This document shows positions 23,439 through 49,900 of a stretch of 64,000 nucleotides of DNA, in pieces. Where the stretch lies: positions 62,001 through 126,000 of the IMG/VR virus record IMGVR_UViG_3300043410_001892; one strand, given 5' to 3'. The number at the start of each line of letters is the position of its first letter. Position 1 is the first letter of the stretch. The notes under the pieces are model-generated. The model was not told where the DNA came from, ran no database searches, and saw only the letters and a list, made by a program, of their open reading frames with translations. Both the position numbers and the translations under genes were made by a program.

Positions 23439-23879
23439 TTATTTGGAACCATTATGAAAAATATCATTTTCATTAATGACTCTAAATACAAGACCATTTT
23501 GTTTACAATATGCAGAAGCAGCAGCCCATTTGGCTTGATTTTTAATAAATTGTGCTTGATTGTATTTGTTTTTTCCTACACGTTCTAATATTTGCTGACT
23601 TGCAGGTTTTATTTCAATCAATTCATTATGTATGTGATTATTTTTATCTACGTATTGAATAAAAAAATCAGGTAGATAAATGGTGTTACGATTAGTCAAT
23701 GGATCTCTATATGGAATAGTTACTGCTTCACTTGCCCATTTTTGTACTGCAGGGTTAGTATCGCACATGTGCATAAATGTCATTTCCCATGAACTTCTGT
23801 AATATGGTATTTTGGTTCCTATGTATTTGTCAGGGTGTTTAAATTTAAAAGACCCCTTGGCAAATTTTCTACTACTCAT
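23439..23879 (-). CDS. gp4: Head completion nuclease (T4 gp4-like, TnsA-type PD-(D/E)xK)
   Basis: KHPDKYIG, YRSSWE, WASE, YLPDF, IEIKP, NQAKWAAA. Confidence 0.9.
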   Translation of the reverse strand: MSSRKFAKGSFKFKHPDKYIGTKIPYYRSSWEMTFMHMCDTNPAVQKWASEAVTIPYRDPLTNRNTIYLPDFFIQYVDKNNHIHNELIEIKPASQQILERVGKNKYNQAQFIKNQAKWAAASAYCKQNGLVFRVINENDIFHNGSK

Positions 23880-29429: not shown

Positions 29430-29437
29430 TATTTATA
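29430..29437 (-). promoter_or_regulatory. T4 late consensus TATAAATA upstream of the sheath gene
   Basis: Exact match, followed by GGAG and the ATG at 29397. Confidence 0.7.
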
Positions 29438-33109: not shown

Positions 33110-34594
33110 ATGCAACATTTTTATGACGGTGCCATAAGACGGTACCTTACTCAAACAATTCGAGTTTTTAGTGAATTTACAGTACGATACGGTGACGGAA
33201 CGCTGCATCGTGTACCTGTCGGTTACGGTGACGGTGATCGGCAAACTACTAGTGTTATTAGACAAAATTCAGAAAACACTCTAAATTCAATACCACGTAT
33301 CAGTATATACATATATGGTCTTGATTTAGACCGAGATCGTCTTGCAGATTCAACATTTGTTAGTAAAAAAAGTATAAGAGAACGAGATATCAACGGAAAC
33401 GCTTACACTAATAATCGAGGTAGAAATTACACAATCGAACGCGTAATGCCAACCCCATTTAAATTAACTATGAAAGTTGATATTTGGTCTGCAAATACTG
33501 ATCAAAAATTACAAATTTTAGAACAAATTTTAGTGTTATTCAATCCAAGTTTAGAAATTCAGTCGACTGATAATTATATTGATTGGACGAGTATTTCTGT
33601 GTTAAATTTAGATAGTGTTGCTTGGACAAGTAGATCAGTTCCTGTAGGAAATGATAGTCCTATTGATATTGCTACATTAACAGTAGACTCACCAATATGG
33701 ATTAGTCCTCCTGTTAAAGTTAAACAACTTGGTGTTATTACTAAAGTTATTACTGGAATTACTGATGCAAATGCAGCAGGATCAACTGGATTTGGTACAG
33801 ACTATGTAGTACCTGATTATATTCAATCTGCACTGTTAACTGAAGTTATTTCGTGTGTAGAAAATTACACAATTGAAGTATTAGGAACACAAATCACATT
33901 ATACAGTTCACATGAATCAGATTTAGCAAATTACGTTTCATTTGATATGCCATCTCATAGCGAATATCCACGTAAATGGGAAGAAATATTTGAAAAATAT
34001 CCTAAAAAATTTATACCAGGAGTTACTCGTGTTTTCCTAATGCAACGCAATGGTACAGAAATTAATGGTACTGTATCACTTCATCCAACAGATGACGGTA
34101 TTTTACTAGTTGATTGGGATTATGATACATTAAATCCTAATACTGGTATTAACAGTCAAGGTTATTTAGATACCGATGATACAAGTTTGTATAATCAATC
34201 TCCGCAATATAGACCAAATAGCCCTGGAACATTTGATGCAATTATAGATCCGTTATCATATGATCCACATAGACCATTAAAAGAAAGCACAGATCAGCCT
34301 ATTCCAGTTGGTTTAAGATATTTAATAATTGAAGATATTGGTAGTGATATAAATGCCGACGGAGCAAGTGCTTGGAAATCTAATAACGGAAGTGATTTAG
34401 TTGCTCATGCTAATGATATTATTGAATGGACAGGCAGTCAATGGAATGTTGTTTTTGATTCGATACATGAAACAGATACTATGATTTGGCAAACTAATAC
34501 ATATACAGGTATACAATATCTATGGAATGGTATTTCATGGGTTAAAAGTTTTGAAGGAATTTATCCGGTGGGAAAATGGCGATTAGAACTGTAA
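33110..34594 (+). CDS. gp15: Tail terminator / sheath stabiliser (T4 gp15-like) with C-terminal extension
   Basis: FYDGAIRRYL, RVPVGYG, PRISIYIYGLDLDRDR, MPTPFKLTMKVDIWS, QILEQILVLFNP. Confidence 0.88.
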   Translation: MQHFYDGAIRRYLTQTIRVFSEFTVRYGDGTLHRVPVGYGDGDRQTTSVIRQNSENTLNSIPRISIYIYGLDLDRDRLADSTFVSKKSIRERDINGNAYTNNRGRNYTIERVMPTPFKLTMKVDIWSANTDQKLQILEQILVLFNPSLEIQSTDNYIDWTSISVLNLDSVAWTSRSVPVGNDSPIDIATLTVDSPIWISPPVKVKQLGVITKVITGITDANAAGSTGFGTDYVVPDYIQSALLTEVISCVENYTIEVLGTQITLYSSHESDLANYVSFDMPSHSEYPRKWEEIFEKYPKKFIPGVTRVFLMQRNGTEINGTVSLHPTDDGILLVDWDYDTLNPNTGINSQGYLDTDDTSLYNQSPQYRPNSPGTFDAIIDPLSYDPHRPLKESTDQPIPVGLRYLIIEDIGSDINADGASAWKSNNGSDLVAHANDIIEWTGSQWNVVFDSIHETDTMIWQTNTYTGIQYLWNGISWVKSFEGIYPVGKWRLEL

Positions 34595-35025
34595 CAGACA
34601 GTATTGTATGTAGTGGATCGTTGATTTATTCAAGATCTACTCATAGATTTTTACTCATTCAAAAGTCTTCAGGCAAACATCAAGGAACTTGGGGATTAGT
34701 AGGAGGCACAAATTTAGCCAACGAAAATCCCTGGCAGGGTCTTACCCGTGAAATTGAAGAAGAAATAGGCTTTTTACCAGACATTAAAAAAACTCTACCA
34801 TTAGAAAAATTTGTATCAAATGATAGTATTTTTAATTTTCATACATATTTTTGTTTAGTTGATAACGAATTTGTTCCAATTCTAAGTGATGAACATATTG
34901 CTTGGGGTTGGTTCAGTATGTCTGCATTACCAAAGCCAATACATCGAGGGTTAAATCTTAGTTTGCGTAATAAAATTATTCAAACTAAGATTCAAACTGT
35001 AATTGACATTATTGATAGTTTATAA
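34576..35025 (+). CDS. NUDIX hydrolase
   Basis: WGLVGG-x5-E-x7-REIEEEIG Nudix box. Confidence 0.9.
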   Translation: MAIRTVTDSIVCSGSLIYSRSTHRFLLIQKSSGKHQGTWGLVGGTNLANENPWQGLTREIEEEIGFLPDIKKTLPLEKFVSNDSIFNFHTYFCLVDNEFVPILSDEHIAWGWFSMSALPKPIHRGLNLSLRNKIIQTKIQTVIDIIDSL

Positions 35026-35943
35026 TTTTGCTTTAATATCAGCTAACATATTGTCAATTAGTCGTTTTGTTTCGTCTTCGTTAAAATCCATTGCAGTATC
35101 GTTTAGCTGATCAGCTTCAAACGACGAAAACATGTTAATTCTAATTGGACTATATCGTTTATTAAATCCTTCTTTTTCAATGATATTAAAATGATTTGGA
35201 TAAGTTACATTTTCAGCAAATGTACTTCCTAAAATTACAGTTCCCGGTGTATTAACTGCGTAAGCTAAATGTTGTCCTACACTATCACACCCTATAAAAT
35301 AATCAGCATGTTGAATAATTGAACCCCAAGTACGCAACGGAACATTTTCTGGGTGTCTTGTATATTCATTATTTGGTATTTGAAATTCTGACATACTGAT
35401 AATATTATAATACTTGCTTAATTCTTTTGCAATTGATATAAATGTAGATAAATTTAAACTTCTACTCATTGGGTCAATTACTGTATTAAGATCAGTGCAT
35501 TCTTCAGAACTGCGACCAAATGGTTGAATTACAATAGTTTTTTCTTTGTTAAACTGTTCTTTTGCTCTTAAACATGCTACTTTCCCAGTAATATCGTCTT
35601 GTTTGTTAAACATAATATTAGGTCGGTAATCAAAATCTTCTCTAATACTACCATTTATTAATTTATCAAATGCCTGTGAGATATTAATTTTTTGATTATA
35701 GTATTCATAATCAGCATACGGTTCTGGTATAATTAATTCACTACCTTTAATAATATTTTCAAATATGCCTTTAGTTGATGATTCGTACATCCTATCTTGT
35801 AATAACGGATTGCCTAATAAAAATTCAGACCCGCCATCAAGAATAATATACGAATCTGGGTTTTCAATAATAAACCGCTCTAACGCCGGAATAGCGCATA
35901 TTACTCTCCCCATACCACCGTTGATTAAAATTGTCTTTTTCAT
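35020..35943 (-). CDS. Glycosyltransferase family 9-like (heptosyltransferase fold)
   Basis: GGMGRVICAIP N-terminus, IVIQPFG, and ADYFIGCDSVGQHLAYAVNTPGTVILG C-terminal motif. Confidence 0.8.
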   Translation of the reverse strand: MKKTILINGGMGRVICAIPALERFIIENPDSYIILDGGSEFLLGNPLLQDRMYESSTKGIFENIIKGSELIIPEPYADYEYYNQKINISQAFDKLINGSIREDFDYRPNIMFNKQDDITGKVACLRAKEQFNKEKTIVIQPFGRSSEECTDLNTVIDPMSRSLNLSTFISIAKELSKYYNIISMSEFQIPNNEYTRHPENVPLRTWGSIIQHADYFIGCDSVGQHLAYAVNTPGTVILGSTFAENVTYPNHFNIIEKEGFNKRYSPIRINMFSSFEADQLNDTAMDFNEDETKRLIDNMLADIKAKL

Positions 35944-36379
35944 AAATCCTCAATTTGTTTTCATTATTTACACAGTATGATAGCAAGATATCTCTAATAT
36001 GGTTTGACCAAAATTCTGCATCTTGTGTGCTAACTCTAACATTGTAAGTTATTGGCGGTTGAAATATTTGATTAGTATTTTGGTATTTACAAAATAAACA
36101 TGTATCAACAAATACTGTAAAATCTGCATTAAATAAGTTTCTTATTTTAGCAGTAGGCGCAATAAAATCACAAATAACATATTTTGATTTAGATTCATCT
36201 GCTAATGATTTCATTCTAATGCCTTGTCGTAACCGACCTTCATCACTAAAATCCCAATCATTATAAAGTGATCGAATAGTATCACCGTTATAATATGTTG
36301 AATTTGGTAATTTTTCTATTAATTTACGAGCTAATGTAGTTTTACCGGCCCCTGATAATCCCATAATTAAAATTTTCAT
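35864..36379 (-). CDS. cysC: Adenylylsulfate (APS) kinase-like protein
   Basis: GLSGAGKTT, NGDTIR, DFSDEGRLRQ and DFIAPT mirror CysC motifs. Confidence 0.8.
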   Translation of the reverse strand: MKILIMGLSGAGKTTLARKLIEKLPNSTYYNGDTIRSLYNDWDFSDEGRLRQGIRMKSLADESKSKYVICDFIAPTAKIRNLFNADFTVFVDTCLFCKYQNTNQIFQPPITYNVRVSTQDAEFWSNHIRDILLSYCVNNENKLRIYEKDNFNQRWYGESNMRYSGVRAVYY

Positions 36380-36897
36380 ATATTAAAAAAGTCAGTAGCA
36401 CTGTTTCTAATGTTTTCGCATTTATCGTATAATGCAACATAGTCGTATCCTAACTCTTCAAATGCTTCGTGTCTAATAGCATTTTCAAAATCAGTTTTAG
36501 CCTCAACGGTATAACCCCATCGTCTATAAGCTTCTTGTCGTATTTCTAACGATTGATCATTTACTGCTTCTGGCGGATATCCAAATGTTCGATACGCAAG
36601 TCTACGAATAAAGAAAAACGGACTTTCGCAAGCTTCTAGTTTAATACCAGTAAATGCCCAATATCGCATATTATAACTTAAATCTGGATCAGGTAATGTA
36701 AATGTGTTTAAAGCCATACTTGCTTCCCATCGAATATCCGGATCTGGATCAGTTAGTGCCGCTTCTGTAAATCCGTTTGTTCGATATGCATATTCACGAA
36801 TTTGGTAATCTGGGTCGTCGTATGCTTCATCTGTTATTCCGTTTTCCTTGTAGTATTGTAGTCGTTGTTTTGTTGTTAACTCACTCATTTCTGTCAT
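36376..36897 (-). CDS. HEAT-like helical repeat protein
   Basis: About six 21-22-aa units D-x-x-x-x-I-R-x-x-A (DPDYQIREYA, DPDPDIRWEA, DQSLEIRQEA, DFENAIRHEA). Confidence 0.7.
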   Translation of the reverse strand: MTEMSELTTKQRLQYYKENGITDEAYDDPDYQIREYAYRTNGFTEAALTDPDPDIRWEASMALNTFTLPDPDLSYNMRYWAFTGIKLEACESPFFFIRRLAYRTFGYPPEAVNDQSLEIRQEAYRRWGYTVEAKTDFENAIRHEAFEELGYDYVALYDKCENIRNSATDFFNI

Positions 36898-37678
36898 AAA
36901 ATTTTCTCCAGTATTCTAAATCTGAGTATCGTTCTATAATATCATCAGGCAAAAGCATATGATTATTTATTTTGTTAACACTTGGTCGAACATCATGTAA
37001 TCCTGGTAGATTAACTTCGGCATCGCAACCGTTATCGTTAACTGTTGGAAGATTTGTAAAATCGTGTTTAAAATTTTCTATTTCTAAAAACTGATATAAT
37101 GCATTAATCTCAAATTCTGTATTTGAAACTAACGATTCATATTCTATCAAATATATAGAATGCGAATATTTTGAATGTATTGCTTGTTTTAACGCATTTA
37201 AACTATATCCAACTACACCATTCCAATCCATTAAGCATTCAGCTCTTGAATATACATTTACATATTGTGAACCATATACTTGTGAATATATTGAATACGG
37301 ATTTTTTCTGTATATAGTTTCAAACGAATTTAATATATCACATATTGAGCGTACACAGCAAATAATTTTTACATTAGGCATTGCGTTGTATAATATATCA
37401 ATGTGTCCAGCCCACATACGATTTGTATCAAAAATTATTTCATTTGGTATAGATTCATAGACTGTATCAAACACTAATTTTATAAGTTTTTGTGTATGTT
37501 CAGTAGTAACTATATGATTTGTTCCTGAATAATCAGGTTTAAGAAGTGAATCAACTAATGGCCCTACTCCTGATGTAATATTTGCATAGCATTTTGGATT
37601 CTGTGATAAGATTGACGATAATAATGTTGACCCAGATCTTGGTAATCCAGATATAAAAAAATATTGTTTGTTAGACAA
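36881..37678 (-). CDS. PAPS-dependent sulfotransferase
   Basis: 5'-PSB motif SGLPRSGSTLL, 3'-PB motif CCVRSICDILNS, IEYESL; TTG start overlapping the fibre stop. Confidence 0.9.
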   Translation of the reverse strand: MSNKQYFFISGLPRSGSTLLSSILSQNPKCYANITSGVGPLVDSLLKPDYSGTNHIVTTEHTQKLIKLVFDTVYESIPNEIIFDTNRMWAGHIDILYNAMPNVKIICCVRSICDILNSFETIYRKNPYSIYSQVYGSQYVNVYSRAECLMDWNGVVGYSLNALKQAIHSKYSHSIYLIEYESLVSNTEFEINALYQFLEIENFKHDFTNLPTVNDNGCDAEVNLPGLHDVRPSVNKINNHMLLPDDIIERYSDLEYWRKFYDRNE

Positions 37679-40241
37679 GTGCTCCTCCTCGATAGCCTTT
37701 TGTTACCCATGTTACATTGCTGTTTCCGCATACTGCTGCTCCTCCGGTACCGCCCGGTCTTCCTCCACCATAATACACAGTTGTATTTTGAGCAGTACTT
37801 TGTCCGCCACCCTGGCCACCAGAACCGCCATATGTGCCTCCACCGCCACCACCTCCACCGCCGAGTCCGCCAGTAGAACAAAACCCACCAGATGATCCAC
37901 CAGAACCGCCAGTTTGCGTACAGCATATAGTATCAGTAGCATTAGTAGTACATGCTTTCCACCCTCTGCAGCCTCTTCCTCCTGGATTACATGATGATCC
38001 AATGCCTCGTCCAAATCCACCATTACCGCCATTGCCAGCGTAGTAATACGAATATGATGAGCACCAACCAGCTGCGGTACCGGCAGTACCTGCTGTTGAA
38101 CCAGCATAGTTACCGGATGTTTTATATGCTGCTCCATATGTTCCACCTGCTCCTCCTGGTATACCACCACCGCCTCCACCGCCACCACCGTGCCACGCGT
38201 CGCCACCACCACCACCGCCACCACCACCGCCAATTGTGCAGTTGTTTATTATACGCAATGGGATATTAGTCCATATTGCTGGGCCACCATTAAAACCAGC
38301 AACACCTGTGCTTGTTCCTTTACACCCTCTTCCGCCAGCACCGCCGCATCCCATTACTGTTCCATAATTAATAAATGTAAGTGATTTACGAGCAGGCATT
38401 GTGATTCCACAGAAACAGAACATAGGATTAATGTTTGATGAGCATAGTCTGCTACCAGAACCTATACAAACATTAACTGCTTTTATCCCGTCCCATCCAT
38501 AATTAGATAATGTAGAACTATTAAAGAGTATGTTACCTGAACATGAATAGTATGTTATGTTTAAAACAGTTGGTACTCCGGCAATTGTTGGTCCAGTTTC
38601 GTATGTTTGAAATGAAGAACCAGTAGCTGTACATGCAGTTAACGTGTAATAGTAGGTATTTCCGTTAGTTAATGGGCCCACACATACTGGAGATACTGTA
38701 GTAACTGTATTTTTAACAGTGTCTAAATATGTTCCACCGTTAGCTATATTTGCATTTGATTGCGAAGTATATGCACGAAGTGTATATGAGTTAATAACGC
38801 TATATGGGTCATATGGTACATTAAATAACAAGTATGTACATTGATTATTAGGTTCTACTATAATCGATGACGGTGCAGACGGGGCTGCACGAACAGTTAC
38901 CGCAGACGATGTTGCAGTACCTCCGGGGTTTGATGCTTTTAAATAAACAGTATTATCAAGTGCCGGTGTTAATCCGCTAATTGTAAAATTTGTAGACGAA
39001 AGCTGTGTACTAATATAGAAAAATACTAATGAACCAATAGATCCACTTGCAGTAGTCGTAATTGGAGGGCCGTTAAATGTTGCAGATAACTGAAATTGAT
39101 TAGAATATACTGATGTATTAACAATATAATATGTAGTTGGGTTAACATATCCAGTTATTGTTCCTGGACTCGTACCAGAAACCATTATAGTAGCACCTCG
39201 TTCATAAGAAACTGTAGTAGTTGTAGTAGTAAACCAACCATTTGTTACTGCGTTAATTGATACACTAGATAATATAGTCGCGTCATGACAATATGTAAAA
39301 GTATATCCACTTGTAGATCCACCATTTGTAGTAGTGATTGCTGCTCCGCCTTGTGTTGCTGATAATTGAAATGTAGTAGGATTAGAAGATCCTATTACAT
39401 AGTAAGTTTTAGGATTTGAGTATCCAGTAATAACTGCTGCACCGGTACCACTTATTATTACTCTACAACCAACTGAGATATTTGGATAATAAATATCGCC
39501 AGTACCGCCGCATGCAAAATTCCCAGTTGTGCTTGTAATAGTTACACTTGATAATGGAAAAATACCAATATTAATAGGTACAAGTGTGCTTCCAACCCAT
39601 GCAGTATAATACCCACCGGATCCTGTAAAATTAAGATATGCAGAATTTGATCGTATATTACCGGTTGAACTATATACTGGTGCATTAGGTATTGTCCATG
39701 CAATTAAAACATCTGATGATGTTGATCCAGACGAATTAGTTGCATATACATACATATTATATGAAGTATTTGCAACAGGTGATAGATTAGTTGAACTATT
39801 AATAGTAGTTCCAGTGTATGCTGGTGTAACACCGGTTATTAGCGTAGAATTATTATAAATTGAATAAGTTAATCCTGAAACATTTGTCCATGATATTATA
39901 AATGATGTTTGCGTTGAACTAGAATATGCCAATCCTGTTGGTGCAACAGGTGCAGTTAATACTGTATAGTTTGCCGAATCAGTATATGCTGTTCCTAAAA
40001 ATGCTCTAACTCTCATTACATATGATGTATTTCCAGTAAGTCCACTAATTGATGAACCGGTATTGCTAGTAGCTCCTACAACTTCAACACCTGCTTTATA
40101 AACCTTATAAGTTATGCCCGGAATTGATGCAGCATCCCATGTAAGAATAAATCCTGTACTTGTAATCGACGATGCAGCTATATTTGTCGGTGGAGGTGGT
40201 CCGCCGGCACTACCTACTAATATTAAGTTATTTCCACTCAT
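37671..40241 (-). CDS. Distal tail fibre / receptor-binding-like protein with FN3-like domains and Gly/Cys-rich C-terminus
   Basis: FN3-like units (PPTNIAAS..FILTWD..YKVY; APVAPTGL..FIISWT); two YY(V/I)...FQLSAT modules; poly-Gly end; start MSGNNL. Confidence 0.7.
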   Translation of the reverse strand: MSGNNLILVGSAGGPPPPTNIAASSITSTGFILTWDAASIPGITYKVYKAGVEVVGATSNTGSSISGLTGNTSYVMRVRAFLGTAYTDSANYTVLTAPVAPTGLAYSSSTQTSFIISWTNVSGLTYSIYNNSTLITGVTPAYTGTTINSSTNLSPVANTSYNMYVYATNSSGSTSSDVLIAWTIPNAPVYSSTGNIRSNSAYLNFTGSGGYYTAWVGSTLVPINIGIFPLSSVTITSTTGNFACGGTGDIYYPNISVGCRVIISGTGAAVITGYSNPKTYYVIGSSNPTTFQLSATQGGAAITTTNGGSTSGYTFTYCHDATILSSVSINAVTNGWFTTTTTTVSYERGATIMVSGTSPGTITGYVNPTTYYIVNTSVYSNQFQLSATFNGPPITTTASGSIGSLVFFYISTQLSSTNFTISGLTPALDNTVYLKASNPGGTATSSAVTVRAAPSAPSSIIVEPNNQCTYLLFNVPYDPYSVINSYTLRAYTSQSNANIANGGTYLDTVKNTVTTVSPVCVGPLTNGNTYYYTLTACTATGSSFQTYETGPTIAGVPTVLNITYYSCSGNILFNSSTLSNYGWDGIKAVNVCIGSGSRLCSSNINPMFCFCGITMPARKSLTFINYGTVMGCGGAGGRGCKGTSTGVAGFNGGPAIWTNIPLRIINNCTIGGGGGGGGGGDAWHGGGGGGGGGIPGGAGGTYGAAYKTSGNYAGSTAGTAGTAAGWCSSYSYYYAGNGGNGGFGRGIGSSCNPGGRGCRGWKACTTNATDTICCTQTGGSGGSSGGFCSTGGLGGGGGGGGGTYGGSGGQGGGQSTAQNTTVYYGGGRPGGTGGAAVCGNSNVTWVTKGYRGGALV

Positions 40242-40258
40242 ATTTTTAATTACCTTTT

Positions 40259-43200
40259 TTATGAAATTCCGGATCCGGAAATGACCCAAGAAGTAGAACC
40301 TATCTTAAGTAAAGTAGCAAGTCCGGATGCTCCTAATGTTCTTGTTTTTGTAGTATCTGAAGTTCCTGCCCAAAATAAATTATCAGTTGTTGTAATAGAT
40401 AATGCAGCTGATGTTACATCATTAACAATCGTAATTGCAGTTCCTATTGGAAATGCAACTGACGAGTTTGCAGGTATTGTATAAGTATGCCCAGTTGTTG
40501 CACTACTATGGAAAACATGTTTTCCAGAATCAGTTAATGCAAAACTGTATGATCCTACTTGTGCATTTTGAGGTACTTCTAAATAACCAACAGTAAATGT
40601 TCCAGCCGGTAATGTAGCATTTGTAGTAGCCGTTGATGTTAATGTTATCGAATTTGCACCAGCTGTTATTAATGAAGAACCATTTGCAATTGTTAGTGTA
40701 GTAGTTCCAGATGCTCCAGGATCTGTAATCACTAAGTTATTTACTTTAGTAAATGTACCAGTGCTTGCAGTAGTTGAACCAATTGGTGTATTTTGAATAC
40801 TTAAAGCTTCAAATCCAACATTACTAACCCATCTTCCTGATGTAGATGACCAAGTTAATGTTTTATCAGTAGCACCTTTTAATGTAATACCGCCACCATT
40901 TGCCGTTGCATCAGACGGAGTAGTAACTACACCTAATTCTATATTTTTATCATTAACTTGAATTGTAGTAGAACTAATAGTAGTTGTTGTTCCGGATACG
41001 GTTAAATTACCATTAATAGTTGTTGTTCCTGATGACGAACCAATTGATATAGTTGTCGCAGCACCAAATGCATTTATAGTTGTTGCTGTAGTATTAAACA
41101 CTGAAAATACAGTTGAATCTGTAACAACTGATGTTGTAAATGTTGGGCTTGTTGAAAGTACATTATTAGTTGAACCGGTTGATGTAGTAACACCTGTACC
41201 TCCATTAGCAACTGCTAATGTTCCAGTAACGCCAGTTGTTAATGGTAACCCGGTACAGCTTGTTAATGTACCTGATGTTGGTGTTCCTAATGCAGGTGTT
41301 ACTAATGTTGGACTTGTATTGAACACTAATAAACCAGAGCCAGTTTCATCTGAAATAACACCAGCTAATTCAGATGAAGTTGTTGCAGCAAATACTGATA
41401 ATTTGTTTGTTGTGTAAGTAACGGTACCACCGCCACCTAATGAAATTGTTGCTGAATCAGTTCCACTAAATGTAAGAGTATTGTTTATACCAAGTGTTTT
41501 TCCATCTACAATAGTAATTGTAGATCCTGTAGCTACTGCAGTAAATGCAATCTTATTAATTGAAGTTGCAGTTGCAGCACCAAGTACTGGAGTTGTTAGT
41601 GTAGGACTTGTTGATAACACGTTGTTACCAGAACCAGTTGATGTAGTAACACCTGTACCGCCATTAGCAACTGCTAATGTTCCGGTAACACCAGTTGTTA
41701 ATGGTAATCCAGTACAGCTTGTTAATGTACCTGATGTCGGTGTTCCTATTGCTGGTGTTACTAATGTAGGACTATTACTAAACACTAATGATCCAGTACC
41801 AGTTTCATCTGAAATAACACCAGCTAATTCAGATGAGCTTGTTGCAGCAAATACTGATAATTTGTTTGTTGTGTAAGTAACGGTTCCACCAAGTCCAAAT
41901 GACACTGCTGCAGCACCGGTAGCATCGTTTGAAGTTAATGTTATTGAATTACTAACTAACAGTGTTTTACCGTCTGCAATAGTTAATGTTGATCCAGTAG
42001 CCGGAGCAGTTATTGTAACTTTGTTAATTGCACCTGATGTTAATGAACCGTAAATTGTCGCTGACGTAGTGCTTGCAGTTCCAATAACTGTAGTGTTTGG
42101 TCCTGCTCCAATTGCATTTGCACCAATAACAATTGTATTACTGTCTGCCGGAGCAGCACTAGTTGTATTATAACCTATAAATGTGTTATTATTACCGCTA
42201 GTTACTGAATTTGATCCATTTGCATACCCTGCATACCATCCTACTGCAACGTTGCCGGCACCGTTTAATACATCGTGTAGTGCATAATGGCCTACTGCAG
42301 TATTGTTGCTAGAAGTTGATGTTTTAAGAGCATAATAACCAATTGCAATAGAACTTGATCCAATTAAGTTAGCCGATAATGCACTACTACCAATAGAAAT
42401 ATTATTACTTCCAGTAGTATTTGCAAGTAATGATTGATGACCAAATGCAACGTTATCTGAACCAGTTGTTGCTGCTTTAAGAGTCTGATATCCAGATGCG
42501 GTATTTCTTGCACCACTTGAAACTGCAGCAATTGACGATAAACTTTGATATCCAAATGCAGTATTTGTTGCTACTGAGTTAGCACCTAACCCAACTGTGA
42601 GTGTATGCAGAGATGCATCTGTTGTTGTTGTAATTGTGCTTGACCAAGTACCTGTTGTAATTGTACCAACTGAAACTAATGATGATAATGTTGTTACATC
42701 AGTATTAACTAATGTACCAGTAGTAGGCAATGTAACAGTAGTTGCACCAGTAGAAGTTAGTGTAATTGAATTTGCACCAGATGTTGCTAATGTTGATCCT
42801 TGTGCTAATGTTAATGTTGCACTTGTTGTTGGTTCAGTGATTGTAACTTTGTTTACTGATGTTGCAATTAATCCACCAATTTTTAAACTATCATATGTAG
42901 CTGAAGTAAAATCAACTACATTTGATGCAGGAGCAGTAGGTACTCCGCTGAATATTTTCCACACAGAATCACTTGCGTCTCTAATAACCCCTGTATAATA
43001 CTGTGTTGAATTTTGTCTATAAGTTGAAACGATACCAATATCAACTAGATCTTGTAAATTAGTGTAACCGGAAAATACGTACGAATTAGAAATTCCTTTA
43101 TTTAATGTTACAGTATTTTTAATTGTAGTTGCACCGGTGCTTGCACCAATATTAACTACAGTACCTGCACCTGCAAAGTTTACAGTAGTGGCAGTTGTAT

Positions 43201-43954
43201 TAAGTAAATCAAAACTAGTAGATGCAGTAGTTACTGAAATTGCTATATTTGGACTTGTTGTAGTTAGTGTATTAGCAACAGTTGTGGTACCAGTGCTTGC
43301 ACCAATACTAACCAAAGTACCTGCACCTGCAAAGTTTACAGTAGTGGCAGTTGTATTAAGTAAGTTAAAACTGGTAGATCCAGTAGTTATTGAAGTTGCT
43401 ATATTTGGACTTGTTGTAGTTAGTGTATTAGCAACAGTTGTGGTACCAGTGCTTGCACCAATACTAACCAAAGTACCTGCACCTGCAAAGTTTACAGTAG
43501 TGGCAGTTGTATTAAGTAAATCAAAACTAGTAGATGCAGTAGTTATTGAAGTTGAAATACTTGGGCTAATACTGAATACAGCTTTTGCACCAGTAGAATA
43601 ACCAGTTTCGTCTGTTAAGTTACCAGCTAAATCTGCAGAACTGCTTGATGATAATGCAGTTAAATTATCGGATCTATAAACACCATTTGTAACAGTTGCG
43701 GCATTTCCGCCAATATTTAAATTAGCAACAGCAGTAGTTGATAAAACAGTGAACGGTGCTGTGCCGGTTGCAACAGTTGAAACAAATTGTGTTCCTGTAA
43801 CTGTGCTACTTGAATATATTTTTTTACTAACACCGATACCACCAGTAACTATTAAAGCTCCAGTAGAAGACGATGTTGAGTCGGTTGATAACTTCAAACT
43901 TACAAGTTCGTTAACTGTTAAACCGTTTTGTACAATAAAATCGACTGCTGCCAT
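40259..43954 (-). CDS. Thr/Ser/Gly-rich long tail fibre protein
   Basis: Internal repeats, 14-residue N-x-A-x-G-Y-x-A-L head repeats, and C-terminal VPQN..SY.FALTDSGKH..YTIPANSSVAFPIGTAITIVN domain. Confidence 0.8.
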   Translation of the reverse strand: MAAVDFIVQNGLTVNELVSLKLSTDSTSSSTGALIVTGGIGVSKKIYSSSTVTGTQFVSTVATGTAPFTVLSTTAVANLNIGGNAATVTNGVYRSDNLTALSSSSSADLAGNLTDETGYSTGAKAVFSISPSISTSITTASTSFDLLNTTATTVNFAGAGTLVSIGASTGTTTVANTLTTTSPNIATSITTGSTSFNLLNTTATTVNFAGAGTLVSIGASTGTTTVANTLTTTSPNIAISVTTASTSFDLLNTTATTVNFAGAGTVVNIGASTGATTIKNTVTLNKGISNSYVFSGYTNLQDLVDIGIVSTYRQNSTQYYTGVIRDASDSVWKIFSGVPTAPASNVVDFTSATYDSLKIGGLIATSVNKVTITEPTTSATLTLAQGSTLATSGANSITLTSTGATTVTLPTTGTLVNTDVTTLSSLVSVGTITTGTWSSTITTTTDASLHTLTVGLGANSVATNTAFGYQSLSSIAAVSSGARNTASGYQTLKAATTGSDNVAFGHQSLLANTTGSNNISIGSSALSANLIGSSSIAIGYYALKTSTSSNNTAVGHYALHDVLNGAGNVAVGWYAGYANGSNSVTSGNNNTFIGYNTTSAAPADSNTIVIGANAIGAGPNTTVIGTASTTSATIYGSLTSGAINKVTITAPATGSTLTIADGKTLLVSNSITLTSNDATGAAAVSFGLGGTVTYTTNKLSVFAATSSSELAGVISDETGTGSLVFSNSPTLVTPAIGTPTSGTLTSCTGLPLTTGVTGTLAVANGGTGVTTSTGSGNNVLSTSPTLTTPVLGAATATSINKIAFTAVATGSTITIVDGKTLGINNTLTFSGTDSATISLGGGGTVTYTTNKLSVFAATTSSELAGVISDETGSGLLVFNTSPTLVTPALGTPTSGTLTSCTGLPLTTGVTGTLAVANGGTGVTTSTGSTNNVLSTSPTFTTSVVTDSTVFSVFNTTATTINAFGAATTISIGSSSGTTTINGNLTVSGTTTTISSTTIQVNDKNIELGVVTTPSDATANGGGITLKGATDKTLTWSSTSGRWVSNVGFEALSIQNTPIGSTTASTGTFTKVNNLVITDPGASGTTTLTIANGSSLITAGANSITLTSTATTNATLPAGTFTVGYLEVPQNAQVGSYSFALTDSGKHVFHSSATTGHTYTIPANSSVAFPIGTAITIVNDVTSAALSITTTDNLFWAGTSDTTKTRTLGASGLATLLKIGSTSWVISGSGIS
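41178..41890 (-). repeat. Two copies of an about 250-bp fibre module, 459 bp apart
   Basis: TYTTNKLSVFAATxSSELAGVISDETG...GTPTSGTLTSCTGLPLTTGVTGTLAVANGGTGVTTSTGS occurs twice. Confidence 0.85.
43135..43570 (-). repeat. About three tandem 156-bp (52-aa) coding repeats
   Basis: Anchor GTACCTGCACCTGCAAAG at 43161, 43317 and 43473. Confidence 0.9.
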
Positions 43955-43967
43955 TCTAAATTTCCTT

Positions 43968-46900
43968 TTATATAATTGTTAAACTACTTATTACGCGAAC
44001 TGAAATTGTATCAGTAGCTGCTGCAGCTTGGGCAAGAATTCTTACATTTCCGCTATTAATATCACAGGTAAATGTTGCTAACATAGCACCACCTGATACT
44101 GTTGATATATCACCATATTCTACCATATATGCATTTGTTCCATTATGCAATACAAGTATTTCTGCAACTTGATATGTATTCAAATTTGATCCAGAACTTG
44201 CTGTACAATTAGCTTGTACTATGAACTTAGCACTTCTATATGTTGTCGCTGAAAATGATTTAATAGTAGTAGGAGTAGTTGTAATTCCAGTTACAACTGT
44301 ACCTTGTACTTCCAGATCAGTTTTAATTACTACTGAATTTACAAAAGTAGCAAGGCCATTCCCGTCAATTGTTAATCTTGTAGTAGCACTTTGTGTAATA
44401 TCACCTGATGTTCCAGGAGCTCCTGTTTTAATTATAAAGTTACCAGTGGTACCTGTTCCTGTTGCTAAACCTGGAGTAATTGTAAAATCACTTGCGGAAA
44501 TATTAGTTCCAACTGCATTTTCACCTTTAAGGGTTGCAGCAACTGGTGTTGCACTTGCTTCGCTACTACCTAATGTAACCGTTTTATTTCTTAATAATAA
44601 TGTATTGATTTTTTCAATAGTTCCAACACGCGGTGACGATGACAATGTAATTATTGTTGCTATTTTAACAGTAAATGACGATGATGAACTACCTGCACTT
44701 GTCACAGGCCATGTTCCGTCTAAGTTAGCAATGCCTGATGAAGCTATTGTTACTTGATCACCTGCTTTAATACCTAAACTTGTATTGGTATGTGCAAAAA
44801 CAACGGTTGTTAATGAAGTAAGATCAGTTGAAATTGCGTTGCTAAGATACACCGATGTTGCATCAATACCTGTTACAAGTGTATTTGATGGTATACCTGC
44901 TGCAGATTGAACTAATTGTCCAATTACAATTCCAGTTGTACCTGAAAATGTTAATTTTGTACTTGAGCTTGTGGCTGCTGTGAATAGAGCAAATCCAGTT
45001 CCGCCTGTATATACAGTACCAACACCTGCGACCGTGCTTAATGTAGTACCAGTATTTGCATACGTAAATGTTGTTGTATTAACTACCGTTACTACTGATA
45101 AATTTAATCCATTAAATGTTGTATTGTTACATACAATCGTAACAGTATCACCAGAAGTTAATCCATGTGCAGTTGAAGTAACAATAGTTGCAATATTGCT
45201 GCCATTTCTTGCAACAGTTGAAATTACTAATGCTGATGATATAACTGCACTAATTGAAGTTGTAGCACTACCTGATGTGGTATAATTCTTAACGATTGTA
45301 GTAAATGATCTAGTATTTGAACTTGCACCAATTACTACACTGCTTGCAGATCCACCTACATTTATTGATAATGCATTAGTGTTGAATACATTTGCAGTAC
45401 CTGTGGAAACAGTTTGTATTTCTCCAGAATTAGTTTTAACTATAGTTGCTAATGTTAATGAATCTGCCCAGTATGGCAATGAACCATTACTGCTTAAAAT
45501 TGTATTTGCTGGGCCAATTGCTAATTTACTAAGTGAAGATGCATTATTAGCATAGAGTAAATCGCCTGCTGTATAACCAGTTAAACCAGTACCACCTTTA
45601 TCTACTGGTATTGAACCAGTAAAGTTAGCTGGATCTAAGAAGTATGATGAATCATAAGTATCAAGTGTACCTGCATCAACAACACCGGCTTTAATAAACA
45701 CACGCCCAGCGGTATTTCCAGTACCAACATCAAATTGCAAGACGTTAAATTGTGCTACACCCATAGTTGAATAATCACTATTATCAGTTGGGAAAGTTGC
45801 TTTTGCAATATCCATTGTAACTGCACCGTAGTACGGTGATACACCAGTTCCGCCAAGTGTTATTATAGATGTGTTAGATTTTAAACTGGCAACAGCAGTT
45901 GCCCAAGATGAATCACCTCGTAAATATGTACTTGAATTTGCAGTTCCAGAACTTGCTAATCGACTAGTTGAAATTGTTCCAGAAACGATGTTACTTGCAT
46001 CAACACCTGATGTAGTTAAAAGTCCCCAGTTTGATAAATTTTTACCACTAGTATTTGAGAACCCAATTATTTGTACTTGATCATGAATTAACCAATAAGT
46101 GTTTGAACCGGTTGAACTAAAATCAACTGCTGCAATAGTAGAACCTGATACACTTACTAACGAATCTGCTCTATAAAAATGTAAAGTAAATGAATTAGTA
46201 GTAACTGATCCAATAAAGAATGTTTGTCTATCAGTTATTTGTATAATAGATCCAGATAACAAATAAGACGGTAACGTTGATCCTGTAATCGTTACAGCAT
46301 CACCTGTTGCTAATCCATGACTTGCAACATATATTCTGTTGTTAGTGGTATTAACTGTACTAATTGTTAAAGTGTGGCTACCTGTTGAACTTGTACCTAA
46401 TGTTACATACGTAGCACCATTGTATTCAGTTGATAATCTAAATGTATTAGCCGATAGCACTATAATATAATACGGTGTAACAATAGATAAATTACCAATT
46501 GCAGGATTTACACCTGGGCTATATATAACTGGGTCACCATTTGATAATCCATGTGAGTTAATTGTGATTATATTATTAACATAATCAACTGCTGATGCAG
46601 CATTAAATGTTTTTGTTATAGTAGTACTAACAGTTATTGGTAACCAAGAACTATTGTTATCAGTAACAAAATCTGGTGAATTTGAAGATCCAGTAAACTG
46701 CCCACCTGTCATATTATTGATATACAGTCTAGTTTCAACTGTTGATACTGTTATACTAAATCCAGAACCAACCGGTAATGATGCTGATAATGTATTGCCA
46801 ATTCCGTAACCTGTACCTGCATATACTAAATCAACTGCGGTAACTGCTCCACCTGTTACTGTAATATTTGCTAATGCGCCAGACCCTGCACCGCCTGTAA

Positions 46901-49900
46901 GTGCAACACGAGAGTAAGATCCATTAGTGTATAATGATCCACCTGATATTGTTAGATTGTTTACAACAACTACCATTCCTCTGCGCACTTCATATACTTC
47001 GCCTTGTGCTTGAGAACTTGCTGCAGTGATTACAGAATTTACAGTTCCAGTTTCAGATACTGGGGTAATAAATGTTAATGCTGCCGTGCTTGTTGATGTC
47101 ACTGACGATGTTGTTGGAAAAGTAACAGTAAAGGTACGTGGACTTGCAGACATGTTAACTGCAGAAATAATAGATCCAAGAGGTAACCCGCCACCAAACA
47201 CATAATCATTTACATTTATAGTTCCGGATAATGCAGCACTTGCTACTGTTCCAGTTGTAGTTGATGCATTTGATGCTGCATTGATAGTTGCTGTAGCAGT
47301 AGTAGTTGCTGATGCAGTAGTTGCAGTATCAGTATTTGGATAACTAAACTTCGTTGTTGTTAAAACAGTAACATACGGTGAAGTGTTATACGATGTCAAC
47401 GTGGTTGCAGTAACCTTAACTTGATTATTTGTAACTAAATTATGAGCTGCAGTTGTGATCACATAAGCAATATTGTTATATCGTATTACTGAGCTGATAG
47501 TTGCATTTGTATAGGTGTACGTACCGTTGTATGGAATTACTAAGTATTGATTAGTTGATGAATCTCTTAATACGTTTGTATCATTTGCTTCAACTGCGGC
47601 GCTAACTGCAGAACAATAAACTGAAGTATTTGTTGTGCTTGGTGTTGCATCTCCGCCAATTGTTAGTATATGTGCGCTGTTAGTATCAAATGATACGCTA
47701 AAAGTTTCATATTGACTTGCAATTACTACAGTTGTACTGTTCGTAACATCACCTTTAATGTAACCAGTTGCTCCACTTGTATCTTGTGTAACTAATGCAA
47801 AATCTAAAGCAGTAATTGGTAGGCTTAACGTAATAGTAACTGTTTGGAATTTTTCAGTACAAGTGTCGCCTGCTATAAAACTAACAGACGGAACATCTTC
47901 GTATGCAGTTAACCGTGAATGATAACCTAATCTAATAAGTGCAGTTGGTGCTCGTTGTGCCGGAATCAAATCATTATTAATTTGTCCAGCCGAGTTAAGT
48001 TGAACAACTGCACCTGGTACTGCGTTTGTGCTAACTGATTTATCAATAAATGATCCTAATCGAGTTTTAAGATAAGTCCACATAGCAAGCTGTGTGCTTA
48101 ATTTATTATTAGCTGGTCCACTGATTTCGTTTTCACCTAATCCAATATCGCTGCTAATTGCATCAATTGAAATATCACTTAATGCTAATTTTAATACATT
48201 TAACTGGCTAACTGTAACTGTATTTTTAAATACGATATTACCTGTTCTGTTGTAAGCAGTAATAAAGTTACCAACTTGGAAGTCACCTAATTCGTTAGTT
48301 CCTGATGAGTAAACTCGTCCTGCGTTCTCTTCAAATTGTTGGAAAGCAGGGTAACCTTGTCCACCGTTAACTGGTAATGCATTATAGTCAATACCAGAAC
48401 CTGCATATTCCCATGTATGACCTGATGAGTTAACAATACTTGGTCTATGGAAATAAACTTTCTTACCTGGTAATGAGTTAATATTGTTTAATGATCCATC
48501 TAACAATGATGGCATTACTGTAAATGTTGCACCATATAAGTCACTTCTTAATGTTACAGAAGTAACACTAATTGCTGGACTAAACACATCTGAACCAGCT
48601 TTAGTTATAGTTGATCCAGCTGCAAATAATTTTCTAATTGGATTGTTATAAATGGTAACAACATTGATTGCAACTACTAATGTATTTTCTCCATCAAAGC
48701 TATAAACGTTTGCACTATTTGGTTGTCCAGTTGTTACACCTTCAAGTTTTTGTCCAGGAACAAATGTATAGGTATTGTTATTAAGAACAATAGTTTGGAA
48801 TACATGATGTGTTTCTATTACATCATCAACAAATAATTCGTAGTCGTTTTTAACGATTGAATGTAAACCGGTACTAGTGCGTGTAACATTAAGTAATAAT
48901 GATAAACTATTATCATGTGCCAATTTAAATTGTGTAGTGTTCAAAAATACTACATAGTATTGGCTACCTGTAAACATACCACCAAGCGGTACTTGATTAT
49001 TTGTATTGTAAACAACCGCATCACCATTTACAAATCCATGTGGACTGCTTGTTGTGAAGATATCATTTACTATATCAATTTCAGTTGCAGCATTAAATGT
49101 CACTTCTAAGTAACTTGGTGATCTTGTTTTATAATTTGAAGTAAGATCAAGTGGTCCAAATTGTGTAGAAATATAATCAGTTACAAATGTTTTGATTGCA
49201 TCTTTATTAGTTTGTAAAATTGTACTTTGAACTACTAAATTCGTATCTTCAACCCAACCTACACCTGGTTCAAATACTGATGGTTCAGTCCCAGTGCTAA
49301 CCATTATGCGTAACTCTTCAAGTCTTGCAACAACAAATGCAGTTGCATCTACTGACCCTGGATTACCACTAATGTATTGCCCATTACCAGCTCCGTATCT
49401 TAGTGCAACATAGTTAGATATTTCAGTTTGACTTGCACCTTTATTAGAAACTAAGTTGCTGTTTTGAGTAGTTAAGTTTGAACTAACCCATGATGTACTT
49501 GGAGAAATAACAGTTGGTTCAACACCTGTACTAACCATTACACGCAATTCTTCTAAACGAGCAACTGCAAACGTAACTGCATCTGATGAAGCAGCAGTTC
49601 CACTAATTACTTGTGTTGCACTACCAGTAACTGAAGTTATATAAGTTGTAACTGCAGTTTGACTTGTTGATTTATTTGTAACTAGTGTACTATTTTGAGT
49701 AGTTAAGTTTGAACTAACCCAAGTAGTGCTAGGCGAAATAACACTTGGTTCAGTTCCGGCACTAACCATTACACGTAATTCTTCTAAACGAGCTACTGTA
49801 AAAGTAACTGCATCAGTAGAACCTGCATTTCCGCTTACTACTTGAGTTGTTACATTTCCAGTTGATTTAGTCCAAGATGTATTATTAGTTAGAATGCTTC

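Follow-up and report, generated by a model that had tools for sequence, protein, structure and literature searches.

Fibre-linked genes for predicted sulfation and glycosylation in a freshwater jumbo phage

Described systems of sulfation and adhesin glycosylation

In Xanthomonas, the RaxST/RaxPQ/RaxX-RaxAB system carries out tyrosine sulfation of a type-I-secreted peptide (PMC4892823), with a cytoplasmic TPST-like sulfotransferase (ST) that works with a dedicated PAPS supply and acts on a protein that is later exported. Animal tyrosylprotein sulfotransferases TPST1 and TPST2 are membrane-anchored enzymes, and in rhizobia NodP/NodQ/NodH combine PAPS synthesis with Nod-factor sulfation, next to carbamoylation by NolO/NodU. 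TibC/TibA and Aah/AIDA-I are pairs in which an O-heptosyltransferase modifies a Ser-rich repetitive autotransporter adhesin in the cytoplasm. Among phages, P-SSM2 and S-CAM1 carry a cluster regarded as an 'LPS' or cell-wall-modification cluster, and mycobacteriophage transferases encoded next to structural genes modify virion proteins (Freeman et al. 2023, as cited in PMC12619734 and PMC12801897).

We analysed a 64,000-nt window (positions 62,001 to 126,000 of IMG/VR record IMGVR_UViG_3300043410_001892) from a 372-kb T4-related jumbo phage, in which a sulfotransferase, a HEAT/LRV-type repeat protein, an APS-kinase-like protein and a GT9-like glycosyltransferase (GT) follow a tail-fibre gene. 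In the Rax system the substrate is a short peptide; at this locus it would be a phage fibre (or, in bacteria, a giant adhesin), there is no sulfurylase, the kinase is a lid-less mini form and an extra HEAT/LRV protein is present. Relatedness to RaxST at the sequence level was not examined. TPST1 and TPST2 are the closest solved structures to the ST model, although identity is only 15-20% and the phage enzyme is soluble and has no membrane anchor. The rhizobial system shares the pairing of a dedicated APS kinase with a sulfotransferase, and sister phage cassettes carry Nod-like carbamoyltransferases, but NodH and NoeE are structurally more distant and the acceptor here is probably not a lipo-chitooligosaccharide. 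TibC shares the GT9-type GT-B fold with the phage GT at about 12% identity, the phage protein lacking the first ~96 residues of TibC. The cyanophage cluster contains the same GT family (39% identity) flanked by tail-fibre genes, but there the GT is paired with a carbamoyltransferase and heptose-nucleotide synthesis genes, without ST, kinase or HEAT protein. In the mycobacteriophages the GT families and the targets (capsid and tail tube) differ, and no sulfation is involved.

Gene organization at the end of the tail-fibre operon

An earlier note, made from the sequence alone, had described these four genes as a cassette that follows the fibre gene with overlapping stops and starts, with the TTG start of the ST using a Shine-Dalgarno sequence from the last Gly-Gly codons of the fibre, and without ATP sulfurylase in the window. 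Our analysis confirmed this observation, and all four genes were located where the note had placed them (Table 1).

Table 1. Features of the fibre-linked gene string and its flank
Position	Strand	Feature	Remarks
43968..53483	-	3171-aa giant structural protein	Heads the tightly packed string (gaps from 53505 downstream are 21 nt or less); no Pfam family; relatives carry equivalent giants
40259..43954	-	1231-aa Thr/Ser-rich repeat fibre protein	Directly upstream of and overlapping the 872-aa gene, in the same gap-free string; PHROG virion structural protein 6e-119
37671..40289	-	872-aa distal fibre/adhesin, proposed substrate	N-terminal FN3 domains (Pfam fn3 1.7e-10), Gly/Cys-rich gp38-like tip (GP38 6e-5), PHROG tail fibre; Tyr 6.3%, D+E 1.8%
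37682..37688	-	GGAGGAG Shine-Dalgarno	Within the terminal Arg-Gly-Gly-Ala codons of the fibre
36881..37678	-	PAPS-dependent sulfotransferase, 265 aa	Predicted TPST-like fold; TTG start at 37676-37678
36376..36897	-	HEAT/LRV-type helical-repeat protein, 173 aa	Proposed adaptor, function unknown; always between ST and kinase in this lineage
35864..36379	-	APS-kinase-like P-loop kinase, whole gene
35954..36379	-	Conserved kinase core (residues 1-142)	Lid-less; proposed to convert host APS to PAPS
35864..35953	-	Non-conserved 29-aa kinase tail with its stop codon	Runs into the GT gene
35020..35943	-	GT9-fold (GT-B) glycosyltransferase, 307 aa	Fold from AF2 model
34576..35025	+	Convergent NUDIX hydrolase	Pfam NUDIX 1e-14; backbone gene paired with gp15

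The fibre gene ends CGA GGA GGA GCA CTT GTC TAA, with 3 nt separating GGAGGAG from the TTG, and its stop codon (37671-37673) gives an 8-nt overlap with ST. ST and HEAT overlap by 17 nt, and HEAT and kinase share ATGA (4 nt). The kinase and GT overlap by 80 nt, which is large only because this phage has lost the kinase stop codon that relatives keep. The TTG start with the Shine-Dalgarno inside the Gly codons recurs in relatives L006 (82% ST identity) and L008 (61%), and is thus more than chance. Simple scans found no terminator-like site on the strand of the cassette between the fibre gene and the GT, and no excess of promoter-like sites. Late expression, as proposed in the note, was not tested and is inferred from gene position only. 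The only RNA-type library holds a single 208-nt contig over the HEAT-like gene, which could be DNA. No ATP sulfurylase was found by Pfam or PHROG scans of the ORFs of the window, and tblastn with CysD, CysN and a Sat-CysC fusion also found nothing.

Synteny with fibre genes across related phages had been proposed in advance as a check on the cassette, and it held: the order fibre, ST, HEAT, kinase (with or without GT), convergent NUDIX/gp15 was kept in relatives with 82, 61, 57 and 51% ST identity. All four genes are co-linear and overlapping in the related loci L006-L009 as they are here, whereas ST-HEAT-kinase is complete without any GT in L010-L012 and L025. Conversely, the GT occurs without ST in other lineages, usually with a carbamoyltransferase, another sugar-decorating enzyme. 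The two sets of genes are therefore separable modules. The slot is visibly variable.

Sequence and predicted structure of the enzymes

The ST scored above the Pfam gathering thresholds for Sulfotransfer_3 (7e-18, 66.1 bits against 27) and Sulfotransfer_1 (1e-11, 45.2 bits against 22). It has no signal peptide, because the PAPS-binding loop starts at residue 11. The 5'-phosphosulfate-binding (5'-PSB) residues P13, R14, G16, S17 and T18 and the 3'-phosphate-binding (3'-PB) residues R110 and S118 were invariant in 31 homologues, and they align to the TPST1 PRSGTT and VRD...S motifs. In structural comparison (VIA) the AF2 model (pLDDT 92) was closest to TPST1, TPST2 and tick TPST (Z 19.6-20.6, with 20.6 for TPST1; 234 aligned residues, rmsd 3.0), compared to 16.6 for CurM ST, 13.7 for heparan-sulfate STs and about 11 for cytosolic SULTs. 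In Swiss-Prot AFDB the top 13 hits were all TPSTs, with NoeE and NodH at ranks 15-16, and the family profile hit TPST1 at 3.6e-10. However, the TPST catalytic Glu is not conserved in the profile alignment, where TPST1 CGEET (G-E-E-T) lies opposite the family's ITSP, and Tyr specificity is therefore unproven. This rests on sequence alignment only, without structural superposition of side chains. Transfer to peptidyl-tyrosine was not assayed, and the only support for it is context, in the form of coupling to the fibre gene and, in bacteria, to giant adhesin genes. The TPST-like fold nevertheless speaks for a protein rather than a carbohydrate acceptor.

The repeat protein matched Pfam HEAT with 23.2 bits, just below the cut-off of 23.5, while relatives score above it and its ESM Atlas neighbours are HEAT/LRV clusters at 0.93, so that the profile match alone does not settle its membership of this class. 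The family is rare, with 203 representatives among 1.84 billion proteins, only 4 of them at E<=1e-30.

The kinase exceeded the Pfam cut-off for APS_kinase (PF01583, 38.6 bits against 21.1), but only residues 3-95 match, and all NCBIfam APS-kinase models score far below their cut-offs, so the profile thresholds point both ways. tblastn with CysC gave 31% identity (4e-7). Alignment with E. coli CysC showed that the P-loop, the D-x-x-R and the Phe/Arg residues of the APS pocket are retained, with G35, G38, G40, K41, T43, R68, F77, S78, R82, R88, F107 and P110 (CysC numbering) invariant, although the first Asp of DGD is Asn throughout the subfamily. The mobile lid segment (CysC ...RDPKGLYKKARAGELRN...), about 16-19 residues, is deleted in all mini-kinases by a 16-residue gap plus a 3-residue gap. 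The 'APS kinase' of the earlier note is thus a lid-less mini form.

The GT fell below the Pfam GT9 cut-off (PF01075, 16.1 bits against 22) and the NCBIfam cut-offs (RfaQ/heptosyltransferase III 5.5e-7, 28.7 bits against 467; TIGR04414 18 bits against 200). Its AF2 model (pLDDT 91) nevertheless has a clear GT9 fold, with Z 21.9, 20.1, 18.9 and 18.1 to Veillonella GT9 (3tov), TibC, WaaF and WaaC, against 12 or less for other GT-B enzymes. TibC, a protein O-heptosyltransferase, was the top Foldseek hit (6e-10; the match covers TibC 97-391), but the GT matches the LPS enzymes as well as it matches TibC. The C-terminal donor-binding motif D(T/S)G..H is kept, with invariant D220 and H225 aligning with WaaC, WaaF and WaaU. 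In contrast, the N-terminal Asp of these enzymes (WaaC D13, the proposed catalytic base) is replaced by an invariant Arg13 in all 32 phage-family sequences. Use of ADP-heptose was not measured, and the indirect support is that homologues in P-SSM2 and S-CAM1 sit next to GmhA- and HldE-like genes.

Genomic context and possible targets

In order to look for the target of the ST, we examined 79 species with the closest bacterial ST homologues (34-41% identity). Of 71 loci with enough sequence, 47 had a co-oriented ORF of 600 to more than 3300 aa starting within 800 nt downstream, and 34 of these carry DUF4347, compared to a rate of 8.3% for control genes. Seventeen loci have canonical CysC, ten of them within 200 nt of ST (eight directly upstream and two directly downstream), and an eleventh, L232, has a Sat-CysC fusion 37 nt upstream. 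These loci are not phylogenetically independent, but the cysC-ST-giant RTX/DUF4347 adhesin operons follow the same logic as the Rax system. The bacterial ST operons contain no GT9.

Among 80 viral kinase loci, 22 have an ST within 10 kb, often adjacent. Fibre-like ORFs, a compositional proxy, lie near 17 of 20 viral ST+kinase loci, compared to 18 of 54 kinase-only loci. In L028 and L105, two of the viral loci, the enzymes lie between fibre genes. The kinase is also next to an ST in another jumbo phage and in an independent bacterial O-antigen-type cluster, where the neighbour is a Sulfotransfer_1 gene.

Taken together, we believe that the most likely reading, with a probability of about 0.5, is that two separable modules inserted in a variable slot of the fibre operon modify the phage's own fibre/adhesin proteins in the cytoplasm of the infected cell before assembly, a virion modification of which we found no report. 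In this view, the mini-kinase converts host-made APS into PAPS, which the ST uses to sulfate the fibre, the favoured possibility being direct O-sulfation of protein side chains, possibly Tyr, in the Tyr-rich, acid-poor 872-aa adhesin. The repeat protein may act as an adaptor or scaffold, and the GT would transfer a sugar, probably heptose from ADP-heptose, to the fibre in the way TibC/Aah heptosylate adhesins. The analysis itself demonstrates the gene identities, folds, motifs, overlaps, conserved synteny and the recurrent ST-kinase and ST-giant-adhesin linkage, whereas co-translation with the fibres, PAPS formation, the identity of the acceptor and the biological effect (altered charge, receptor binding or shielding of the fibre) are inferences, made without chemical or expression evidence.

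The interpretation in the earlier note, a late-expressed pathway building a sulfated glycan on the Ser/Thr-rich fibres or on host LPS, was partly supported. The family-level gene identities, the tight arrangement behind the fibre gene, the absence of a sulfurylase in the window and the logic that APS kinase feeds the ST were supported, the last because kinase and ST are neighbours again and again in unrelated phage and bacterial loci. Of its two targets, the fibres gained comparative and structural support. A single pathway, in which the GT puts a heptose or other sugar on Ser/Thr of the fibre and the ST then sulfates that sugar, is not required and appears unlikely, given the separable modules, the lack of GT9 in the bacterial ST-adhesin operons and an ST structurally nearer to TPSTs than to NodH/NoeE or heparan-sulfate STs. 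In its favour are the co-linear, overlapping genes and the loci L028 and L078, which combine ST, GT9, carbamoyltransferase and kinase in one block between fibre genes.

Host-surface remodelling is not excluded but is also doubtful. Here the GT and ST would act on host LPS core, O-antigen or another envelope glycan and mask receptors, causing superinfection exclusion or preventing progeny from being trapped on debris, and the position next to the fibre genes would reflect only a recombination-tolerant slot. GT9 is canonically an LPS-core heptosyltransferase family, the cyanophage homologues sit beside heptose-nucleotide genes in clusters that the literature reads as host cell-wall modification genes (PMC12801897), and the O-antigen-type cluster with a mini-kinase and the variability of the slot also fit. 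On the other hand, the closest structures of the ST are protein sulfotransferases, its closest bacterial homologues are coupled to giant adhesin genes and not polysaccharide clusters, the GT lacks the Asp that LPS heptosyltransferases use, and receptor masking would be expected early, not at the tail of the late fibre operon.

The least likely reading is that the genes are unrelated to the fibres and act on sulfur/nucleotide metabolism or a small molecule, with a kinase that is not an APS kinase. The closest phage homologues of the kinase are mostly fused to an NMNAT-like nucleotidyltransferase domain and lie in DNA-metabolism regions of Xylella phage Salvo and Stenotrophomonas phage DLP6, the lid is missing, and 58 of the 80 viral kinase loci show no ST within reach. 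This is opposed by the strong recurrent ST-kinase adjacency, also in several bacterial operons with true CysC, by the conserved position inside fibre modules and by the retained APS-contacting residues.

The note had also suggested that the convergent NUDIX enzyme could process nucleotide by-products, which was not supported. NUDIX follows gp15 in 73 of 78 related loci that show sequence past the gene (80 were fetched), whether or not a cassette is present, and thus belongs to the conserved gp15 backbone. Its stop codon and that of the GT share the palindrome TTATAA.

Gene arrangement and junctions of the cassette

The 64-kb window corresponds to the structural module of a T4-related jumbo myovirus, encoding portal, prohead protease, major capsid protein, tail sheath, tail tube, gp15 and terminase. 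The sulfotransferase (ST) gene occurs with 100% identity on a 372-kb IMG/VR contig (IMGVR_UViG_3300043410_001892), and the DNA is present in freshwater metagenome runs. Megablast of the region against 50,697 phage records returned no match, and no phage in GenBank is close at the DNA level. The major capsid protein is about 70% identical to those of the PA5oct, Serratia BF and Yersinia fHe-Yen9-04 jumbo group, and no host is known for the phage.

A gap-free string of minus-strand genes encodes, in order, a 544-aa protein, a 3171-aa giant protein, a 1231-aa Thr/Ser-rich fibre, an 872-aa FN3 and gp38-like Gly/Cys-rich fibre, and the four cassette genes for ST, a HEAT-like protein, a kinase and a glycosyltransferase (GT). 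The arrangement described in the earlier note, in which the cassette genes follow the fibre gene with overlapping stops and starts and the ST uses a Shine-Dalgarno sequence within the last Gly-Gly codons of the fibre, was confirmed. The fibre gene ends with CGA GGA GGA GCA CTT GTC TAA, the GGAGGAG element is located 3 nt before the TTG start of the ST, and that start overlaps the fibre stop by 8 nt. ST and HEAT-like genes overlap by 17 nt, HEAT-like and kinase genes share ATGA, and kinase and GT genes overlap by 80 nt. The same TTG-after-Gly-codon arrangement is present in relatives with 82% and 61% ST identity, so it is conserved rather than accidental. In comparison, the 80-nt overlap is a local peculiarity. 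Relatives end the kinase at about residue 142 with a stop just before the GT ribosome-binding site, whereas this phage has lost that stop and reads on for 29 non-conserved codons; a shorter version of the same read-on was found in the relative L008. No ATP sulfurylase was detectable in the window, as the earlier note had stated; the rest of the 372-kb contig was not annotated for sulfurylase or heptose-nucleotide genes.

The convergent GT and NUDIX genes end on one palindrome that holds both stop codons, leaving no room for a terminator between them. Scans for sigma-70 promoters and terminators were uninformative. The T4 late-promoter motif TATAAATA is not enriched but depleted (4 copies against 12.5 expected), and none of the copies lies in the operon, although one is positioned about 33 nt upstream of the tail-sheath start codon, as a T4-type late promoter would be. 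With regard to transcription, one RNA-type library, a metagenomic RNA-Seq library, holds a single 208-nt contig identical to part of the HEAT-like gene, which is not enough to show transcription or co-transcription of the cassette, and no other transcript evidence was obtained. Contigs of DNA runs also show joints that skip about 300 nt inside the poly-Gly/Cys tip of the 872-aa fibre. These may be length variants of the receptor-binding tip or assembly collapse at Gly-codon repeats, the flanking matches being short at 21-24 nt.

Coordinates of features in the window and of example loci elsewhere
Location	Strand	Feature
55139 to 35020	-	Gap-free gene string from the 544-aa protein to the GT
43968-53483	-	3171-aa protein upstream of the fibres
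37859-38169		Skipped stretch in the tip of the 872-aa fibre
37682-37688	-	GGAGGAG
37678	-	TTG start of the ST
36422-36629		Match of the 208-nt RNA-Seq contig (library X8)
35864-35953	-	29-aa tail of the kinase, absent from relatives
35020-35025		Palindrome TTATAA
30990-31631	+	Homing-endonuclease gene (PHROG 655, 2e-49) between the neck gene (head-tail adaptor Ad2 by PHROG; relatives' equivalent carries Pfam Phage_T4_gp13) and the next structural gene
29430-29437	-	TATAAATA copy upstream of the tail sheath
5205-5903 and 23439-23879	-	DUF2490 protein (1e-43), unexpected in a phage, and TnsA-like endonuclease domain protein (3e-21)
L039:1677-2483		Kinase-nucleotidyltransferase fusion, viral locus
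L013:4992-5738		Same type of fusion, Xylella phage Salvo gp32
L014:4001-4732		Same type of fusion, Stenotrophomonas phage DLP6
L190:9438-16581		cysC-ST-giant adhesin operon, bacterial genome locus

Sequence features and predicted folds of the four proteins

The ST is clearly assigned by Pfam, and both PAPS-binding motifs are invariant across 31 homologues. It belongs to a very large family of roughly 260-aa enzymes, with 5296 proteins at E<=0.001 among the candidates scored. Its AF2 model (pLDDT 92) is closest to tyrosylprotein sulfotransferases (TPSTs), which score Z 19.6-20.6 over 234 residues, followed by CurM ST at 16.6, heparan-sulfate STs at 13.7 and cytosolic SULTs at about 11. Among Swiss-Prot models the first 13 hits are all TPSTs, while the Nod-factor enzymes NoeE and NodH rank 15-16. 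However, the TPST catalytic Glu does not align with a conserved acid, and the model was not superposed on TPST-peptide complexes at residue level. We therefore do not classify the protein as a TPST, and state only that this is its nearest fold. RaxST was not included in the comparison.

The kinase passes the Pfam APS_kinase threshold, but only over residues 3-95. Aligned with E. coli CysC, it keeps the P-loop, the D-x-x-R, the Phe/Arg pocket residues, the F-I-x-P motif and the final E-x-P, and it lacks the CysC N-terminal extension and the mobile lid. It belongs to a family of 130-155-aa mini-kinases with at least 1200 clusters. The HEAT-like protein is a borderline HEAT/LRV repeat protein from a very small family, with 203 representatives among 1.84 billion proteins and only four at E<=1e-30. 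The 148-aa gene found before the kinase in another jumbo phage (L015) was considered as a counterpart and rejected, since it is not a homologue of the HEAT-like protein.

Sequence and profile searches of the GT against the PDB gave nothing useful, and hhalign against single WaaC and WaaF sequences aligned only the C-terminal motif, so that structure prediction was needed. The AF2 model (pLDDT 91) is an unambiguous GT9-type GT-B fold, scoring Z 21.9 to a Veillonella GT9, 20.1 to TibC, 18.9 to WaaF and 18.1 to WaaC, whereas any other GT-B enzyme scores 12 or less. The donor-side motif (D220, H225) is kept, while the Asp of the N-terminal G-D motif, present in WaaC, WaaF and WaaU, is an invariant Arg in this phage family. 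TibC, which heptosylates Ser residues of a repetitive adhesin in the cytoplasm, is the top Foldseek hit and gives a mechanistic precedent, but the LPS heptosyltransferases are equally close. Remodelling of host LPS or another part of the envelope remains possible, although we consider it doubtful as an explanation of the cassette.

Conserved synteny and the link between kinase and sulfotransferase

Synteny of the cassette with fibre genes in related phages had been proposed in the earlier note as a way to examine its hypothesis, and we carried out this comparison. The order fibre, ST, HEAT-like, kinase, GT, and convergent NUDIX/gp15/gp13/sheath is kept in contigs with 82%, 61% and 57% ST identity, and at 51% identity (freshwater contigs L010-L012) it is kept without the GT. 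We then anchored on gp15 and fetched 80 related viral loci. NUDIX follows gp15 in 73 of the 78 loci that show sequence past the gene, whether or not any cassette is present. NUDIX is therefore a backbone gene, and the suggestion that it serves as a partner of the cassette was rejected.

The space between NUDIX and the fibre genes, together with positions between fibre genes, forms a variable slot. Many phages have nothing there, and others have GT9, carbamoyltransferase and 2OG oxygenase. In the viral loci L028 and L105, the order is ST, 214 aa, GT9, carbamoyltransferase, 103 aa and kinase, followed by two fibre genes. Another arrangement has ST with methyltransferases and a 934-aa multi-GT protein ending in the kinase. 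In another 372-kb jumbo phage (L015, L016 and L112), this larger block comprises ST, an RfbT-like methyltransferase, a TPR protein, a TylF methyltransferase, a 934-aa GT1/GT2/methyltransferase fusion, a small ORF and the mini-kinase, and lies next to a 1208-aa protein and Laminin_G_3 proteins. In cyanophages P-SSM2 and S-CAM1, the same GT family lies between tail-fibre genes, next to a carbamoyltransferase and heptose-nucleotide genes. Thus, the ST trio and the GT are separable modules, and both recur inside fibre modules. The interpretation in the earlier note was supported only in part, since its single pathway building a sulfated glycan on the fibres is weakened by this modularity and now appears improbable.

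Among the 80 best viral matches to the mini-kinase (L025-L104), 22 have this ST family within 10 kb, often immediately upstream and overlapping. In addition, a bacterial O-antigen-type cluster has a Sulfotransfer_1 gene directly before a mini-kinase. This repeated, independent linkage is the main reason to accept PAPS supply as the role of the kinase, despite the missing lid. However, 57 of the 80 are ~265-aa fusions to a C-terminal HIGH-motif nucleotidyltransferase (GRWQPWHxGH...ISATKIR) that is most similar to NadM-type NMNAT, and 13 of these fusions lie next to or near a sulfotransferase. The fusion could be a minimal PAPS synthase or an NAD-related enzyme. In Xylella phage Salvo and Stenotrophomonas phage DLP6 it sits among DNA-metabolism genes, and the subfamily may therefore have more than one role. 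A metabolic role of the cassette unrelated to the fibres is unlikely.

Candidate acceptors and proposed mechanism

The most informative result on the acceptor came from bacteria. A scan of one genome per species with the ST profile returned 79 loci at 34-41% identity (L187-L265). In 47 of the 71 loci with enough downstream sequence, the next co-oriented gene starts within 800 nt, often overlapping, and encodes a protein of 600 to more than 3300 aa, while only 8.3% of other genes in the same loci have such a neighbour. Of these 47, 34 begin with DUF4347, which was confirmed by Pfam in two cases that also carry Big_12, Big_13, Calx-beta, cadherin and RTX repeats. Seventeen loci also carry a canonical, lid-bearing CysC, ten of them within 200 nt of the ST (eight directly upstream and two directly downstream), and an eleventh locus, L232, has a Sat-CysC fusion 37 nt upstream. 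The closest cellular relatives of the phage ST are therefore organised as cysC-ST-giant adhesin operons, with no GT9 present, and these occur in many Proteobacteria and Cyanobacteria (for example L190, L198, L202, L227 and L248). Culturable bacteria that carry the operon include Undibacterium, Chitinilyticum litopenaei and an environmental Pseudomonas (loci L190, L198 and L262). In the viral set, 17 of 20 ST and kinase loci have Gly/Ser/Thr/Ala/Asn-rich ORFs of at least 250 aa nearby, against 18 of 54 kinase-only loci, a measure that is a compositional proxy for fibres. The bacterial and viral counts include related genomes and are not independent samples, and no phylogeny of the ST family labelled by neighbour type was built. 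No domain is shared between the phage fibres and the bacterial DUF4347 giants.

The TPST-like fold, the lack of a signal peptide, the translational coupling to the fibre gene and the unusual composition of the 872-aa fibre (6.3% Tyr, 1.8% Asp+Glu) point the same way, and together they make direct sulfation of the fibre protein the best-supported reading. Our analysis demonstrates the identity and fold of the enzymes, the conserved PAPS and nucleotide-sugar motifs, the overlaps and conserved synteny, the modularity, and the linkages of ST with kinase and with giant proteins. The function itself is inferred from sequence, predicted structure and gene neighbourhood, without chemical evidence. In the proposed mechanism, the genes would be translated with the fibres late in infection, although the timing of transcription was not examined, and the mini-kinase would turn host APS into PAPS, which would be useful in hosts that reduce APS directly and make little PAPS. 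The ST would sulfate fibre residues, with the repeat protein helping to recruit the substrate or the kinase; complexes of ST, HEAT-like protein and kinase, or of ST and fibre tip, were not modelled. The GT would add a sugar independently, and the added negative charge or glycan would change receptor binding or protect the fibre.

A broader reading, which we hold tentatively with a probability of roughly one in three, is that a widespread TPST-like sulfotransferase family, supplied by a dedicated APS kinase (full-length CysC in bacteria, a lid-less mini-kinase in phages), O-sulfates large extracellular binding proteins directly. The targets would be giant DUF4347/RTX adhesins in many Proteobacteria and Cyanobacteria, and receptor-binding tail fibres in freshwater jumbo phages. 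Sulfation would then be a previously unrecognised post-translational modification of phage virions and bacterial adhesins that tunes attachment, and, as a corollary, the common phage fusion of the mini-kinase to an NMNAT-like nucleotidyltransferase could be a minimal PAPS synthase.

Phage host range is set by tail fibres, and covalent modification of fibres by phage-encoded enzymes is barely explored. Literature searches found no report of phage fibre sulfation, of phage cassettes of ST and APS kinase, or of DUF4347 adhesins linked to sulfotransferases, although absence from the literature searched is no proof of novelty. If the cassette sulfates and glycosylates the fibre, fibre chemistry cannot be read from the fibre gene alone, which would affect receptor prediction and the engineering of phage host range in environmental systems. 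The same analysis exposes a large set of bacterial cysC-sulfotransferase-giant adhesin operons, for which the searches turned up no published description, and a very common lid-less APS-kinase subfamily in phages. Both make prokaryotic protein sulfation, so far essentially limited to RaxST, directly testable. As for the other large gene product of the fibre string, the 3171-aa protein has no Pfam family at all, and related phages carry equivalent proteins of 2500-3500 aa, some with faint CBM_5_12 hits.
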